IMG/VR virus record: IMGVR_UViG_3300024358_000009
Span: 1-64,000 of that record
DNA: 64,000 nt
Reading direction: 5' to 3' (one strand)
In this document: in pieces, positions 1 to 12,910 of the stretch
Position numbering within the stretch: the stretch's first letter is position 1
Layout: each line of letters begins with the position of its first letter
Program-made: the position numbers and the translations under genes
The notes under the pieces: model-generated
The model's input: only the letters and a program-made list of their open reading frames with translations
What the model was told of the DNA's origin: nothing
Database searches by the model: none

Positions 1-93
1 CAAGTATACAACCCATTATCAGATGTTCTAATTCATATAGATGAAGATGATGACATTGAATATGTAAATAATAATTATTTTAAAATCTGTTAA
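1..93 (+). CDS. 3' end of hypothetical protein (partial)
   Basis: Frame 1 open from window start to TAA at 91-93 (QVYNPLSD...YFKIC*). Confidence 0.5.
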   Translation, partial: QVYNPLSDVLIHIDEDDDIEYVNNNYFKIC

Positions 94-118
94 TATTTTT
101 TAGTAAACTGCGAATAAA
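90..118 (+). promoter_or_regulatory. variant of repeated bipartite promoter motif (TTAA-N17-CGAATAAA)
   Basis: Intergenic, same spacing as other copies, followed by GGAG RBS and ATG 140. Confidence 0.55.
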
Positions 119-139
119 TATATAGGACAGGAGAATACC

Positions 140-298
140 ATGACTAATGAACAAATTGAAACCCGATTGACCACTCTAGAAAAGATGATGGCTACCGCTA
201 ACCCAAAAGATTTACCAGCGTTAAATGCTAGTTATCAAAAGCTTATGGAAAAACTTGCGGATTCAGATGCCTCAGTTGCCTTCATAAAGGGAAAATAA
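140..298 (+). CDS. hypothetical protein (52 aa)
   Basis: Hand-translated MTNEQIETRL...FIKGK*; GGAG RBS at 130-133. Confidence 0.65.
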   Translation: MTNEQIETRLTTLEKMMATANPKDLPALNASYQKLMEKLADSDASVAFIKGK

Positions 299-299
299 C

Positions 300-581
300 A
301 TGAAGATTAAAGTATCAGATCGGGCGATGTATGGATATATACCTACAGAAAATCCAGATGTATTTAATAGAAAAAGCGTAGTATTTATAAAGGGCAAAGG
401 TTATTACTTCCAAGAAATTTTAGTAAAGATCATTAAACAAACATTGGACGGCATAGTATATGAAATAGAAGAATCAGCACCATATAACAATGTAATAACT
501 ATTAACTTGGAAAACCCAAGAAGGTTTAGCAAGAAAAGGTTAGGCGAACTTTTTGACATTCATGTTAAATGGATTAAATAA
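300..581 (+). CDS. hypothetical protein
   Basis: ORF abutting previous stop; no recognised motif. Confidence 0.6.
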   Translation: MKIKVSDRAMYGYIPTENPDVFNRKSVVFIKGKGYYFQEILVKIIKQTLDGIVYEIEESAPYNNVITINLENPRRFSKKRLGELFDIHVKWIK

Positions 582-593
582 GGGAGTTAATCA

Positions 594-776
594 ATGAAGG
601 AAATTAAATATACCTATGTAGTTGTAACAACTACTGTTTGTATATCTAGCTATGAAGACGATCAAGAAAATTCTATTCGTGGACTTAAACCAGATTTTGT
701 TTCTACAGTTGGTGATTGTTTGGAAGAACTTATGGAGTTTTTGATTTCTTTAGAAAAACAAGTGTGTACAAAGTAA
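594..776 (+). CDS. hypothetical protein
   Basis: GGGAG RBS upstream. Confidence 0.6.
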   Translation: MKEIKYTYVVVTTTVCISSYEDDQENSIRGLKPDFVSTVGDCLEELMEFLISLEKQVCTK

Positions 777-787
777 AGGAGTTAATA

Positions 788-979
788 ATGAATCGGCTAA
801 AAGAAAAGTTTGCATCGTCTAAAGTAAAACTTACCAAGCAAGAGACAAGAATATTATCTCTCCTGCTGTACTACTGTAATAGCCGTATAGGCGATGTTTA
901 TGAGACATTTGAGGATAAGATCAGAGAAGAAGACATAGCTGTAATAGCGAAAAAATTAGGGGCAGAAATACCAAAATAA
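788..979 (+). CDS. hypothetical protein
   Basis: In ORF 716..979; ATG 788 chosen because AGGAG lies just upstream. Confidence 0.6.
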   Translation: MNRLKEKFASSKVKLTKQETRILSLLLYYCNSRIGDVYETFEDKIREEDIAVIAKKLGAEIPK

Positions 980-994
980 CTGAAAGGAAAGATA

Positions 995-1168
995 ATGTAT
1001 GTATATGAGCTAATAGAAAAACTCAAAAAATATCCACAAGATATGTATTTGGAATTTAATGGGGCATATGTCTTTGGTTATATCAAAGATGAGGTAATAA
1101 ACATATGTTACAACCATGATGATAAAGGATGGATTTCTCCAGAAGAAATAAGCGAAAAAATAAAATAA
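995..1168 (+). CDS. hypothetical protein (57 aa)
   Basis: Hand-translated MYVYELIEKLKKYPQD...; AAGGA RBS. Confidence 0.6.
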   Translation: MYVYELIEKLKKYPQDMYLEFNGAYVFGYIKDEVINICYNHDDKGWISPEEISEKIK

Positions 1169-1178
1169 AAAAATTTTG

Positions 1179-1207
1179 TAAATAAAAAGTGGTTACTTAC
1201 GAATAAG
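1179..1207 (+). promoter_or_regulatory. repeated bipartite promoter motif TAAA-N16-ACGAATAAG
   Basis: Intergenic; followed by TATATAG, AAGGAGG RBS and ATG 1249. Confidence 0.75.
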
Positions 1208-1248
1208 TATATAGAGAAGGCAATAACACTATTCAAAGGAGGTTGGTC

Positions 1249-1620
1249 ATGGGTTTGGATAACTACTGGAAAGATCAGCATGGCAAAGAAGGATATGTAG
1301 AAGGATATTTTCGAGTTGTAGGCGGTCTTTGTTCTGGCAATGGCAATGATTCATTCCGTGGAAAAGTTTACAACGAAATAGTTCATGAACTTACAGGAGA
1401 GTCTTTATACCAAGACAAAATCTCAAGCGAGACTGTTAAGGAAATGAACGAAGCTATTCAAGAATGTGAATTTGAAAGAATGAGAAAGCTTACCTGTTGG
1501 GAAATAGAAGAAAATGAGTGGACAGACTTTAAGAGAATGTGGCAAGCACATTCAAACGCACATCATCATTTAGTTAGTTGGTGGTGTGGATGGCTTTTAA
1601 TTAATTGCTGGTTTCAATGA
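1249..1620 (+). CDS. hypothetical phage protein
   Basis: AAGGAGG RBS then ATG 1249; GLDNYW...FRGKVY...SWW pattern resembles phage hypotheticals. Confidence 0.65.
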   Translation: MGLDNYWKDQHGKEGYVEGYFRVVGGLCSGNGNDSFRGKVYNEIVHELTGESLYQDKISSETVKEMNEAIQECEFERMRKLTCWEIEENEWTDFKRMWQAHSNAHHHLVSWWCGWLLINCWFQ

Positions 1621-1647
1621 AATAAAAATAGTTTTAAAACGAATAAG
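1619..1647 (+). promoter_or_regulatory. repeated promoter motif (GAAA-N16-ACGAATAAG)
   Basis: Intergenic; followed by AAGGAGG and ATG 1667. Confidence 0.7.
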
Positions 1648-1666
1648 AATATATAAGGAGGACAAG

Positions 1667-1837
1667 ATGAAAACTGTAACAGTAAAGTTTGTAGTTAATG
1701 ATAATGACGAAGCTGGATTTTTGCTTAATGAAGTAGCAGAAAGTATTGGTAATGGTACTGGTTATCCTTTTATTTTTAGTCTTATTGAAAATAGTACCGA
1801 AGATGAGATTAAATTTTTTACAGAGGTAAACTCATGA
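1667..1837 (+). CDS. hypothetical protein (56 aa)
   Basis: Hand-translated MKTVTVKFVV...; AAGGAGG RBS. Confidence 0.65.
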   Translation: MKTVTVKFVVNDNDEAGFLLNEVAESIGNGTGYPFIFSLIENSTEDEIKFFTEVNS

Positions 1838-1992
1838 AAATAACAATGGAAGAATATACGCTATTGGCTCAAATTTTATTTTATGCCCATGATGACACAA
1901 ACAGAATGAATGAAGAACTAGGACTTAACTATACAACTGAGCAAGTAAATGATCTTGGTAAAAAACTTGGAATTCATATAAATAAAAACTAA
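1834..1992 (+). CDS. hypothetical protein (52 aa)
   Basis: ATGA overlap with previous gene; GAGG RBS. Confidence 0.6.
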   Translation: MKITMEEYTLLAQILFYAHDDTNRMNEELGLNYTTEQVNDLGKKLGIHINKN

Positions 1993-2007
1993 CTATCTAC
2001 GAATAAG
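1979..2007 (+). promoter_or_regulatory. repeated promoter motif TAAA-N16-ACGAATAAG
   Basis: Ends 5 nt before the methyltransferase ATG. Confidence 0.7.
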
Positions 2008-2012
2008 AGTAC

Positions 2013-2915
2013 ATGAGCATGAAAGTTTATGATATGTTTTCTGGGATTGGTGGCTTCTCTCTTGCATTTCAGCAAGAAGGATATGAAGTAACTGCCCAAG
2101 CTGAGATAGATAAATATCCATCTTTGGTTCTACAAAAGAACTTTCCGAACATACCAAACTATGGAGATGTTACTAAGATCAACTATGAAGAAGGTCAGTT
2201 TGATGTAATCATCGGTGGGTTTCCTTGTACAGATATATCCATAGCGAGCAAGACAAAGAAAGGCATTTATGGCGAACGATCTATCTTGTGGAAAGAATTT
2301 TTACGGGCAATCAAAGAAGTCAAGCCAAAATACTGTGTCGTTGAAAATGTCCAAATGCTCGTTAGAAGGGGGCTTAACACAATTCTCGCAGACCTTGCCG
2401 AAGTCGGGTACGATGCGTCTTACACGACCCTTGATGCCCAATTCTGCGGAACCCCACAACGAAGACGCAGAATTTATATTCTGGGAGTGCGTGACGGAAT
2501 CCCCGCAGAAGCCGATCCCTTCCACTTTGCAGAGCGTAGTACAGATGAATGTGGACGAGAAGTACAATCTGTCAAACAGAGCTTTGATTGGAATTTTAAA
2601 GCGGAACACGAAGGGCAAAAAGACTTTGCCTACTTTACTAGACAACGCTCTGATGAATTTACTGGGTGCGGAGTATCATCTACATTGATGAAAAGAGACT
2701 ATAAAGATTTTACCGATGTCATTCTAATAGATGGAAAAGTAAGAAGGGTAACGCCAACAGAAAGACTTCGCCTCATGGGCTTTCCAGATCATTGGCATTT
2801 GGATAACGCCAAAGATACAGACAAGTACAAATATTGTGGAATGGATGTTCATTCAGTTAGATATGTAGCTAGATGTTTAAAGGAATATGACCAATGTTTC
2901 AGTTTGAAAAAATAG
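2013..2915 (+). CDS. C5 DNA cytosine methyltransferase family protein (alpha-type chain)
   Basis: Motif I DMFSGIGG, motif IV GGFPC, motif VI ENV, motif VIII QRRRRIY, RVTPTERLRLMGFPD; motif X divergent (YCGMDV instead of GNxV). Confidence 0.93.
   Translation: MSMKVYDMFSGIGGFSLAFQQEGYEVTAQAEIDKYPSLVLQKNFPNIPNYGDVTKINYEEGQFDVIIGGFPCTDISIASKTKKGIYGERSILWKEFLRAIKEVKPKYCVVENVQMLVRRGLNTILADLAEVGYDASYTTLDAQFCGTPQRRRRIYILGVRDGIPAEADPFHFAERSTDECGREVQSVKQSFDWNFKAEHEGQKDFAYFTRQRSDEFTGCGVSSTLMKRDYKDFTDVILIDGKVRRVTPTERLRLMGFPDHWHLDNAKDTDKYKYCGMDVHSVRYVARCLKEYDQCFSLKK
2269..2688 (+). CDS. putative methyltransferase beta polypeptide (M.EcoHK31I beta-like), nested in +1 frame
   Basis: 139-codon ORF inside the MTase; AAAGG 5 nt before ATG; C-terminus TLQSVV...YNLSNRALIGILKR..KGKKTLPTLLDNAL fits the recalled beta-chain pattern SLSDIL..LS..AC.GILRR...GK.LP..L..AL. 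Confidence 0.65.
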   Translation: MANDLSCGKNFYGQSKKSSQNTVSLKMSKCSLEGGLTQFSQTLPKSGTMRLTRPLMPNSAEPHNEDAEFIFWECVTESPQKPIPSTLQSVVQMNVDEKYNLSNRALIGILKRNTKGKKTLPTLLDNALMNLLGAEYHLH

Positions 2916-3529
2916 CCGATCAGTTTGACGACCATTTAAAAGGCCAATTGTTTTGGCACAAAGATTTTGTCAACCACTTCTTGCCAGAGATTGCATCTGT
3001 ATACATGGAGAAAGATTCTTATGTATATGATTTTGGTGCTAGTACAGGCAATGTAGAAATTGCTTTATCAAACATGATTGAAGAAAGGTGTGTAAACTTT
3101 ACACCAATCGAAAAATGTGTTGAGATGGCAGACAGGTACAAGGGTAATCAAGAAAGACTTATTATTGGAGACTTTTTACATATACCAATTCAAGAGTATT
3201 CTTTTGCTACAAGTATTTTAGCTTTATGTTTTGTTCATCCATCTAAAAGAAAAGGCTTTATTGAAAAGATCAAATCTAAATGCAAAGTTGGTGGGGCGTT
3301 TATCATCCTAGAAAAGATGATTAATTTTGAAGGATATCTTGGTACTGCACTCAGTAGAGTAACTTGGCGAAATAAACTTGAGCAAGGAGAATCTATTAAA
3401 CAAGTTGTGAACAAAGAACTTTCCTTGAGCGGTGTTCAATATCCACTACAAGAGAGTGAACTAGAAGGATTTAGACTTGTATGGGCATATGGTAACTTCA
3501 GATCATATATTTACACAAACGGATTTTAA
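2894..3529 (+). CDS. CmoA-like class I SAM-binding protein (carboxy-SAM synthase family)
   Basis: F..IADQFDDH, VYDFGASTG, GGAFIILEK, W.YGNF align with the recalled E. coli CmoA; overlaps MTase 3' end. Confidence 0.75.
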   Translation: MFQFEKIADQFDDHLKGQLFWHKDFVNHFLPEIASVYMEKDSYVYDFGASTGNVEIALSNMIEERCVNFTPIEKCVEMADRYKGNQERLIIGDFLHIPIQEYSFATSILALCFVHPSKRKGFIEKIKSKCKVGGAFIILEKMINFEGYLGTALSRVTWRNKLEQGESIKQVVNKELSLSGVQYPLQESELEGFRLVWAYGNFRSYIYTNGF

Positions 3530-3534
3530 TTCAG

Positions 3535-3563
3535 TAAATATTTTTTAACTTTCAACGAATAAG
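3535..3563 (+). promoter_or_regulatory. repeated promoter motif TAAA-N16-ACGAATAAG
   Basis: Intergenic; followed by ATTATATAG and AAGGAG. Confidence 0.75.
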
Positions 3564-3586
3564 ATTATATAGAAAAGGAGTTAATC

Positions 3587-3775
3587 ATGCTTGAAGAATT
3601 TAAATGTGAAAATGGTCATTTTGTTATGAATGATAATGTGATGTACATGGTGTTGGACGAAAACATATCGCTTGGAGATTTGATTTGGAATAATGACGGA
3701 GATGTTTTTGAAGTTGGTGAAGATGATGATCTGGTTTATGTAAATGAATACTATTTGAAAGTAAAAAAACTTTAG
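3587..3775 (+). CDS. hypothetical protein
   Basis: AAGGAG RBS. Confidence 0.65.
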   Translation: MLEEFKCENGHFVMNDNVMYMVLDENISLGDLIWNNDGDVFEVGEDDDLVYVNEYYLKVKKL

Positions 3776-3789
3776 AAAAGGAATTAATC

Positions 3790-4194
3790 ATGAAGACTGT
3801 AAACTGCTATGACTATTGCACAACTGAAGATAAGAAGTTTATTTGCATGGCTAATGATATGCTTGAACTTCAATCAAGTATGGAGAAAGGCGATTACGAA
3901 TTTGCCTATTCTGTTTTAAGTGGTAACGGATTTGAACAATACAAATCACTTTCTAGCAAAGAAGTTGATGAACAATACGATGCAATCTCGGACTCTATAG
4001 ATTTTGAAGTAGTGATTAGCATTGCAGAAAATCTAAAAGACAATCTAATAACTCCTCTGCTATATCAAGACAGGGCTATGCAATCAATGTTTGAGGATTT
4101 GGTAAACAAACAACCATTTGTAAAATCTGAAAGGCGAATTAAAAACGCAAGGCAAGAAGTTGCTAGAAGGTTTGGCGAGTACGACAACGATTAA
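3790..4194 (+). CDS. hypothetical protein
   Basis: AAGGA RBS; acidic protein. Confidence 0.65.
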   Translation: MKTVNCYDYCTTEDKKFICMANDMLELQSSMEKGDYEFAYSVLSGNGFEQYKSLSSKEVDEQYDAISDSIDFEVVISIAENLKDNLITPLLYQDRAMQSMFEDLVNKQPFVKSERRIKNARQEVARRFGEYDND

Positions 4195-4199
4195 TACAA

Positions 4200-4272
4200 G
4201 GGCTACTAGCTTAAATAGTAAAGCTCCGAACTCATAATTCGGTGAGTGAAAGTGCAAGTCTTTCGTAGCCCA
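4200..4272 (+). tRNA. tRNA with CAU anticodon (elongator Met or Ile2)
   Basis: Acceptor GGGCTAC/GTAGCCC, D stem GCTT/AAGC, anticodon stem CCGAA/TTCGG with loop CTCATAA, T stem GAAAG/CTTTC with loop TGCAAGT, discriminator A, no encoded CCA; G1:C72 pair argues against initiator. Confidence 0.88.
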
Positions 4273-4286
4273 CTAATTTAGAGGCA

Positions 4287-4481
4287 ATGATGATTACTGT
4301 AATAGATTCTTCAAATCAGTATACTCATAACGAATTTAAAAAAGTAATTATCAATCTATCTAATGATGATGGAAAGGAAGATGTTCTTATAACTATACTT
4401 CCAGACGAATGTTCTATTACGATTGAACACTATTCTTCTGGACAGGAAGAACCATACGAAAAAAGAAAAATAAATTGGTAA
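4287..4481 (+). CDS. hypothetical protein
   Basis: GAGG RBS. Confidence 0.55.
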   Translation: MMITVIDSSNQYTHNEFKKVIINLSNDDGKEDVLITILPDECSITIEHYSSGQEEPYEKRKINW

Positions 4482-4495
4482 ACAAAACGAATAAG
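4467..4495 (+). promoter_or_regulatory. repeated promoter motif (AAAA-N16-ACGAATAAG)
   Basis: At gene junction; followed by AATATAG, AAGGAG and ATG 4526. Confidence 0.65.
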
Positions 4496-4525
4496 AATAT
4501 AGACCTGTCAAGAAAAGGAGTTGCT

Positions 4526-4747
4526 ATGGTAGATGTTTTTATTGTTCGATTGAAGAATCGTGACCATTTTACGATGATGTCGAAAATGGACAAGGCAGAC
4601 TTTTGGGATGGCATTCGTCAGTATTCTAAGAAACTAATATTTGACACTAAAGAAGAAGCATTGCGAATTAGCAAGTATCTTGCAGAAAGAACTTGGCTTG
4701 ATTGGGAAGTTTGCAGTGTTCTTGAGTCTAACTATTGGGAGCAATAA
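4526..4747 (+). CDS. hypothetical protein
   Basis: In ORF 4475..4747; ATG 4526 follows AAGGAG. Confidence 0.6.
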   Translation: MVDVFIVRLKNRDHFTMMSKMDKADFWDGIRQYSKKLIFDTKEEALRISKYLAERTWLDWEVCSVLESNYWEQ

Positions 4748-4989
4748 TGATTGACATGGGCGATGGATGGATTGTTACTTTATCAGATAAATCTTTCCTT
4801 AATGATATGGGTATTAAAGAAAGATATGACTGGTGGAATGATATAAAGAAGGTTACTCGTCTTGAGTTTACCGATAAGGCTAGGGCAGAAGAAACTTGTT
4901 CTATGCTAAATAAAAGAACTGGAATGAAGTGGAAGATTGAAAATAGTTTGTTTACTGGCTTTTATCATGAAAAGAGGCAGCGATCATGA
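4747..4989 (+). CDS. hypothetical protein
   Basis: TAATG overlap with previous stop; GGGAG RBS. Confidence 0.6.
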   Translation: MIDMGDGWIVTLSDKSFLNDMGIKERYDWWNDIKKVTRLEFTDKARAEETCSMLNKRTGMKWKIENSLFTGFYHEKRQRS

Positions 4990-5216
4990 AGATAGACCAA
5001 GCAATCAATATGCTTCAAGAAGCAAAAGCTAATGGATCAAAGAATATTATCTTTGCCTTTTGGGAAGCTAATGTCTTTGAAAGAAAGGCTGGCAAGACTT
5101 TTAAAGATAATGAAACATGGGCAAACATAGCTAACTTTATTGATGAGAATATGGATTGGGCTTATGTTCATGAAAGCTTACAGGAAATTATCAGCGAAAA
5201 CTATGTAAAGGATTAG
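4986..5216 (+). CDS. hypothetical protein
   Basis: ATGA coupling. Confidence 0.6.
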   Translation: MKIDQAINMLQEAKANGSKNIIFAFWEANVFERKAGKTFKDNETWANIANFIDENMDWAYVHESLQEIISENYVKD

Positions 5217-5218
5217 CA

Positions 5219-5428
5219 ATGAGCAAAGACGATATACTTCATTATCTAAATGCCAAGAGTGAGTATACTGCAAATGTCAATCTTCGTAATTATACAGATC
5301 AACAATGGTCTATATCATTTGATGAAGATAGTGTAACTATTAGTACGAAAGCTATAAAGAAAAAGCTTAAGTATAATTCTTTTACTAAAAAAGATTTTGA
5401 TGAAATTTTTGAAACATCAAACGAATAA
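5219..5428 (+). CDS. hypothetical protein
   Basis: Packed ORF. Confidence 0.55.
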   Translation: MSKDDILHYLNAKSEYTANVNLRNYTDQQWSISFDEDSVTISTKAIKKKLKYNSFTKKDFDEIFETSNE

Positions 5429-5429
5429 T
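5401..5429 (+). promoter_or_regulatory. variant promoter motif (TGAA-N16-ACGAATAAT)
   Basis: At gene junction before GAGGA RBS. Confidence 0.45.
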
Positions 5430-5443
5430 AAATAGAGGATGTT

Positions 5444-5707
5444 ATGACAACATTTGAAGAACAGCCAAAAACAAAGAAGCCAAGGATGAGCGAAGATAAA
5501 ATCTTAAATGAAGTTTTTATTCAAATGGGAAAACCAGATAATATTAATATTATCAAGGCAACTGCCGTTAATGTATTTGCTAATAGATATAGAGTTAATA
5601 TTTGGCAAAGCATTAACAATCCTTTTTTGCCTAAAGCTGGCAAGATTGTCGCTAGTTATTTTGTAATTGTTTACGATAGTGGAGAGGTGGTTATCAATAA
5701 TGATTGA
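5444..5707 (+). CDS. hypothetical protein
   Basis: GAGGA RBS; NVFANRYRVNIW pattern. Confidence 0.65.
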   Translation: MTTFEEQPKTKKPRMSEDKILNEVFIQMGKPDNINIIKATAVNVFANRYRVNIWQSINNPFLPKAGKIVASYFVIVYDSGEVVINND

Positions 5708-5972
5708 GTCTTACAGAATGCTTTTAAATTATTTTGCAGCAGAAAATACCCAATCAAAAAATGGCGAAGTACAAATAAACTGTAATAACTTTGATAGTGG
5801 ATTAATTATAAAAAATATTGATGATAGAAGCGTACTTATAAAAGTAAAAGATAGAACAGAACCTCAAAATATGAGAGTTCTTTTTTATCCAATCAAGTAT
5901 AATGTATTGGAGAAGGCTTTAAGTTCTTTAGAAAAGGAAATTAAAAATGGTATGGTGGGAAATCAAATCTAA
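5700..5972 (+). CDS. hypothetical protein
   Basis: In ORF 5667..5972; ATG 5700 follows GGAGAGG. Confidence 0.55.
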   Translation: MIESYRMLLNYFAAENTQSKNGEVQINCNNFDSGLIIKNIDDRSVLIKVKDRTEPQNMRVLFYPIKYNVLEKALSSLEKEIKNGMVGNQI

Positions 5973-12881: not shown

Positions 12882-12910
12882 TTAATTTTTTGACGATTGT
12901 GACGAATAAG
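12882..12910 (+). promoter_or_regulatory. repeated promoter motif (TTAA-N16-ACGAATAAG)
   Basis: In 180-bp intergenic gap; followed by AAGGAGG. Confidence 0.7.

Follow-up and report, generated by a model that had tools for sequence, protein, structure and literature searches.

Structure of the methyltransferase locus

The DNA analysed (hereafter the window) is the first 64,000 bp of a 206,326-bp virus record (IMGVR_UViG_3300024358_000009), from an AT-rich phage of about 32% GC whose sequence is found in DNA and RNA libraries labelled riverine metagenome. Within it, a C5 cytosine DNA methyltransferase gene contains a second ORF in the +1 frame. The features of the locus are as follows.

1999..2011 (+), copy of the promoter-like motif ACGAATAAGnnTA, ending 2 nt before the ATG of the large chain
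2013..2915 (+), large chain (alpha), C5 cytosine DNA methyltransferase, 300 aa, with motifs I-X all in this frame
2245..2685 (+), stop-free run of the +1 frame, 147 codons
2258..2263 (+), Shine-Dalgarno-like GAAAGG, five bases before the nested ATG
2269..2688 (+), nested +1-frame gene, 139 aa, a small chain without motif IX
2322..2666 (+), core dual-coding stretch shared by every family member (alpha residues 104-218)
2736..2801 (+), motif IX (KVRRVTPTERLRLMGFPDHWHL), in the alpha frame downstream of the nested stop
2894..3529 (+), neighbouring class-I SAM methyltransferase gene, 211 aa, overlapping the alpha 3' end by 22 nt and not part of the dual-coding unit

The alpha protein matches PF00145 (E 2e-55) over profile positions 1-310 of 324 in one stretch, so that motifs I-X are colinear in a single frame. 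The family profile aligns end to end with residues 13-318 of the monomeric M.HhaI (PDB 10mh and others; E 8e-36), including motifs IX and X. Motif X is atypical, since it reads CGMDV (about 2835-2849, alpha residues 275-279), and CGMHV in the paralog described below, where relatives have NGM[ST]VP and M.HhaI has GNSV. The nested ORF has an ATG start and a TGA stop, and its offset of 256 nt places it in the +1 frame, wholly inside alpha. The original prediction, that a 139-codon +1-frame ORF with its own ribosome-binding site lies wholly inside the methyltransferase gene, is exact as an observation.

The alpha ATG has no ribosome-binding site. The motif ACGAATAAGnnTA that precedes it occurs 10 times in the window where 1.6 are expected (1199, 1639, 1999, 3555, 4487, 6163 and 22778 on the + strand, with one-mismatch copies at 12902, 34664 and 52040), and in the whole genome 12 times exactly on the + strand against once on the - strand. 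It usually lies 20-50 nt upstream of a ribosome-binding site and ATG, and is probably a phage promoter. The neighbouring SAM methyltransferase gave only weak hits (PF08241 and PF13649) and its role is unknown. The two-gene cassette (window 2013-3529) is duplicated in the same phage genome, from position 161115 onward (1492-3038 of the paralog locus, L002), with 74% and 71% identity. The SAM methyltransferase also neighbours the C5 enzyme in the relatives L175, L009/L010 and L176/L178.

The nested frame against chance expectation

Synonymous-codon permutation of the host gene reaches the length of the stop-free run in about 0.2% of trials, whether codons are taken from the gene itself or from the genome, and P is about 0.002 in each paralog. 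Among 139 ORFs of at least 150 aa in this phage genome the test is well calibrated (4 at P<=0.05 where 7 are expected), and the two methyltransferase paralogs are two of its three strongest +1 signals. Apart from them, the only gene in the phage with a significantly long +1 open frame lies outside the window, at genome positions 113033-113545 (-), with 78 codons in a 170-aa ORF (P 0.002). GC content is 48% in 2301-2600 against about 32% around it, and the same stretch holds a 114-aa antisense ORF (2301..2645, -). We rejected this antisense ORF as a product of local composition (P about 0.3); it is only 89 aa long in the paralog.

Conservation among homologues

The paralog at 161115..162023 encodes an alpha chain 74% identical and carries a 139-aa nested ORF with the same start and stop positions, its stop-free run having the same length and the same ends. 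We collected full-length relatives from viral and metagenome contigs, together with four GenBank Vibrio phages. Seventeen distinct sequences, 43-74% identical to the window and with gene GC of 33-59%, form a clade with 100% support. Closure of the frame in homologues had been named in advance as an outcome that would refute the prediction. In all 17 the +1 frame has no stop across alpha residues 104-218 (about 115 codons), although +1 stops are common before and after that stretch. Codon usage outside the core predicts 2.2-7.8 stops per sequence (P of none 8e-2 to 4e-6 each). In the controls, the +2 frame in the core and the +1 frame outside it, observed counts are close to expected.

Suppressed synonymous variation, the comparative test proposed with the prediction, was also found. 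Where two family members share an alpha residue, they share the codon in 0.68 of cases in the core, against 0.40 upstream and 0.37 downstream. Identity at alpha third positions rises from about 0.35 to 0.5-0.77 within residues 101-220, and in residues 171-210 the least conserved position is alpha position 1, which is the wobble base of the nested frame. This is a protein-coding signature in the nested frame and not one of an RNA structure. Gene conversion between the two paralogs was considered as the cause of the synonymous conservation seen between them, and was rejected because the same constraint holds across 43-58% identical homologues from other phages.

The nested peptides of distant members are 0.42-0.53 identical, which equals the conservation of alpha over the same stretch and is about twice what alpha's conservation gives with random synonymous codons (0.19-0.27). 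None of 1000 resamples reaches the observed value. The first 18 residues of the window's version are poorly conserved, even between the paralogs. Ribosome-binding sites precede the nested ATG in many members, such as AAAGGAGGG in L175 or AGGAG eight bases before the nested ATG in L017, L009 and L176; in L017 this ATG directly follows two +1 stop codons.

Translation of the nested frame was not measured. The region 1-5800 is present at 100% of sampled words in six RNA-Seq libraries labelled riverine metagenome, with contigs spanning the methyltransferase gene, but DNA carry-over is not excluded, and these assemblies give presence only, with no transcript ends. They show neither transcription for certain nor translation. 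The nested ORF is missing from every annotation we saw. GenBank records of Vibrio phages S4-7, 1.233.A/B and 1.052.A and of Ruminococcus phage NatCom_2329 (L255 2363-2773; L012, L013, L014) carry the homologous ORF and annotate only the large chain over it.

Relationship to the small chains of two-chain methyltransferases

Pfam, one of the databases named with the prediction as a check, NCBIfam and PHROG scans of the nested ORF gave no significant hit; a Zot match at E 0.085 is noise. A PDB sequence search and a Foldseek search of the nested model found no solved structure. A single-sequence search of a 5.8-billion-protein set found nothing, and a profile search found only three 139-aa calls on short contigs, one frameshifted fusion and one weak motif-IX-type hit. 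On the other hand, a profile of the family's nested peptides, from an alignment that left out three GenBank phage rows, finds 3717 cluster representatives at E<=1e-3 among 1.84 billion. Their shared features are a stretch such as EDSPAKT, which is the +1 reading of alpha's motif IV (GGFPCQDIS), S.K[TM]S over motif VI (ENV), LPKSG.M over GYDA and, in the type found here, a C-terminal KY.LS.KA..GIL.RA..RGK.LP..L..AL. Among the top 150 hits, 79 have that C-terminal motif without motif IX, 33 have a motif IX, and 10 have both; the small chains among the hits include some with KY.LS..A..GIL.R...LP followed by a classical motif IX.

The locus L258, from a bacterial assembly, shows the archetype. Its alpha chain is 300 aa, with motifs I-VIII, a linker and motif X but no motif IX, and a wholly nested +1 ORF of 244 codons carries the same N-terminal domain, the KY.LS motif and a classical motif IX (VRRLTPTECEILQGFPPGWT). 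L257, a 787-bp contig that holds only part of its alpha gene, shows the same pairing, with a 191-codon +1 chain carrying the KY.LS-type motif and motif IX, and an alpha frame that runs from motif VI to motif X without a motif IX. This is the design described for M.EcoHK31I (Lee et al. 1995, PMC306636, as described in PMC2836561 and PMC3404938). The window's nested protein is homologous to the N-terminal two-thirds of these small chains (against L258, BLASTP 1e-8; hhalign 98%, E 1.4e-13).

In a wider sample of 234 relatives, a regex-based count gives 151 with a motif-IX-like sequence in the +1 frame and none in frame 0. Another 24, including this family, have motif IX in frame 0 and the KY.LS type in the +1 frame. 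Nearly all of them have a +1 ORF far longer than expected, while the +2 frame behaves as the null. At this locus alpha has its own motif IX (residues 242-263); it contains RRVTPTERLRLMGFPDHW, which aligns with motif IX of M.HhaI, and the motif is 59% identical to the one carried by the small chain of L258 (E 2e-6). The nested ORF has no PF00145 hit at E<=1 and no LQGFP-like motif.

The same layout also occurs elsewhere. L108 has motifs IX and X in frame 0 and a nested KY.LS-type ORF. In the Ruminococcus phage, an unannotated 136-aa +1 ORF lies inside a 656-aa methyltransferase CDS that matches PF00145 and ends in motifs IX- and X-like sequences. We first took the Firmicutes-phage matches for an in-frame domain of a single-chain enzyme, but translation of the annotated frame showed that the match is again a nested +1 ORF. 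The +1-frame small chains of some relatives fall into two PHROG families labelled 'DNA methyltransferase': L108 and the protein hits P0145, P0156 and P0173 match phrog_16143, while L020 and L030 match phrog_1008. The window's nested ORF matches neither at E<=0.01. Further arrangements of these modules were seen (P0181, P0199; L045, L047, L105, L113, L198, L234). Some long proteins have the nested-type domain, then a target-recognition region and motifs IX-X, and end in a motif-I-like stretch, and in other loci the +1 ORF has repeated PTPxA[SR]D and RDYKD but neither motif IX nor the KY.LS motif, with IX and X in frame 0.

Predicted complex of the two chains

A structure model predicts that the nested protein binds alpha, with ipSAE 0.89 (three runs, 0.88-0.90) against 0.02 for the best of three controls. 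That mark was reached by 58 of 80 solved complexes and 2 of 110 mismatched pairs. Partner pLDDT is at least 72 and the runs share at least 87% of contacts. The interface is large (about 218 contacts), covering alpha 114-148 (motifs VI-VIII), 162-222 (variable region) and 233-254 (motif IX), and residues 29-51 and 67-131 of the nested protein. The predicted contacts include alpha 134-138 with nested 47-50 and alpha 243-254 with nested 90-101. However, the alignments were our own and come from overlapping frames of the same DNA, and one top contact (alpha 134-138 with nested 47-50) joins residues encoded by the same nucleotides, so some artefact cannot be excluded. The model supports a heterodimer but does not show one, which leaves the association of the two chains undecided. 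Modelled alone, the nested protein is confident only in helices 103-115 and 122-138, with its first 80 or so residues predicted to be disordered, and alpha alone is poorly modelled at 183-233.

Discussion

We suggest, with a probability of roughly 0.7, that positions 2269..2688 are a real second gene overprinted in the +1 frame of the phage methyltransferase gene, and that its product is the N-terminal, alpha-binding part of the small chain of M.EcoHK31I-type two-chain methyltransferases (139 aa here, about 120 aa in more distant relatives). In this view both products are read from the same mRNA, the nested one from its own ribosome-binding site. The motif IX part of the small chain would now lie in the alpha frame, the simplest history being a shift of reading frame just downstream of the present nested stop, which left a small chain without motif IX that has nevertheless stayed under purifying selection. 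In the complex model the nested protein packs against alpha's motif VI-VIII strand and helix, the variable (target-recognition) region and motif IX, which would make it a structural or regulatory subunit that clamps the catalytic and target-recognition parts of alpha. Removing at least 42 N-terminal residues of M.EcoHK31I beta weakens its association with alpha (PMC2836561). Our data demonstrate the ORF, its conservation, the purifying selection on its protein sequence and its homology, while translation, binding to alpha, any effect on activity and the frame-shift history are inferences.

The interpretation first offered, that 420 bp are dual-coding and that the nested ORF encodes a beta subunit of a heterodimeric enzyme as in M.EcoHK31I, is only partly supported. 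Dual coding is strongly supported, the M.EcoHK31I precedent is as stated (PMC2836561, PMC3404938), and kinship with small chains of that design is supported. The defining job of the M.EcoHK31I beta chain is to supply the motif IX that its alpha lacks, and this does not hold here, so a beta subunit that completes the enzyme is supported only in part. The prediction also held that the C-terminus fits that family. It fits the widespread KY.LS.KA..GIL.RA..RGK.LP..L..AL motif that precedes motif IX in L258 and in other small chains found here; the sequence and chain lengths of M.EcoHK31I itself were not compared. Alpha has a full motif set and may be active alone; methylation was not assayed with or without the nested protein.

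Other systems differ in arrangement. [quoted passage not shown] In the window, however, all ten motifs are in alpha and the small chain lies wholly within it. M.HhaI, described as a monomer (PMC3404938), has motifs I-X in the same order as alpha; whether its gene has an open +1 frame was not examined. In E. coli, vsr overlaps the C5-methyltransferase gene dcm in another frame, but only by a few codons at the 3' end, and Vsr is an unrelated repair endonuclease and not a nested subunit.

It is possible, although we consider it unlikely, that the nested protein is real and selected but works on its own, for example as a small DNA-binding regulator of the methyltransferase cassette or as an anti-defence factor. 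The complete motif set of alpha, the pair of C-terminal helices as the only confidently folded part of the nested protein alone, and the lack of any known family giving it a function are consistent with this. However, it is homologous to the N-terminal part of small chains that carry motif IX and so must assemble with alpha, the complex model scores far above the controls, and every copy whose locus we examined lies inside a C5-methyltransferase gene. Still less likely is an untranslated relic of a former small chain, kept open only because the DNA is conserved for another reason, such as an RNA structure or a regulatory element. Motif IX has left the nested frame, so the ancestral function is no longer needed from it, and there is no expression evidence at the protein level. 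Nevertheless, 17 lineages have no stop despite low codon identity outside the core, variation in residues 171-210 concentrates on the nested wobble base, the nested peptide is as conserved as alpha, and start codons with ribosome-binding sites are kept. A chance ORF produced by the GC-richer stretch is refuted by the homologue data, in agreement with the permutation test, its genome-wide calibration and the +2 control.

Long same-strand overlapping genes with firm comparative support are rare in bacteria and phages. The arrangement described for M.EcoHK31I is not confined to that enzyme, since a family of modules is distributed between two frames in several ways, and here a small chain without motif IX is kept inside an alpha that carries every catalytic motif. 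This raises the question of why the small chain is kept. A broader reading, which we hold only tentatively and rate as slightly less likely than not, is that the +1 frame across motifs IV-VIII of a very large clade of phage and prophage C5-methyltransferase genes is an ancient, nearly universal second gene, which persists even where the large chain has regained a full motif set, as in this family and in the few other loci examined, L108 and the Ruminococcus phage. In our sample, 53 of 54 relatives at 40-50% GC have a significantly long +1 ORF. If so, many methyltransferases annotated as single-chain enzymes would really be heterodimers with an unannotated partner that is needed for, or tunes, activity or specificity. 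Phage methyltransferases cloned from the annotated ORF carry the second gene along unnoticed, codon-optimising such a gene would destroy the nested one, and methylome and anti-restriction studies may then misjudge activity or specificity.
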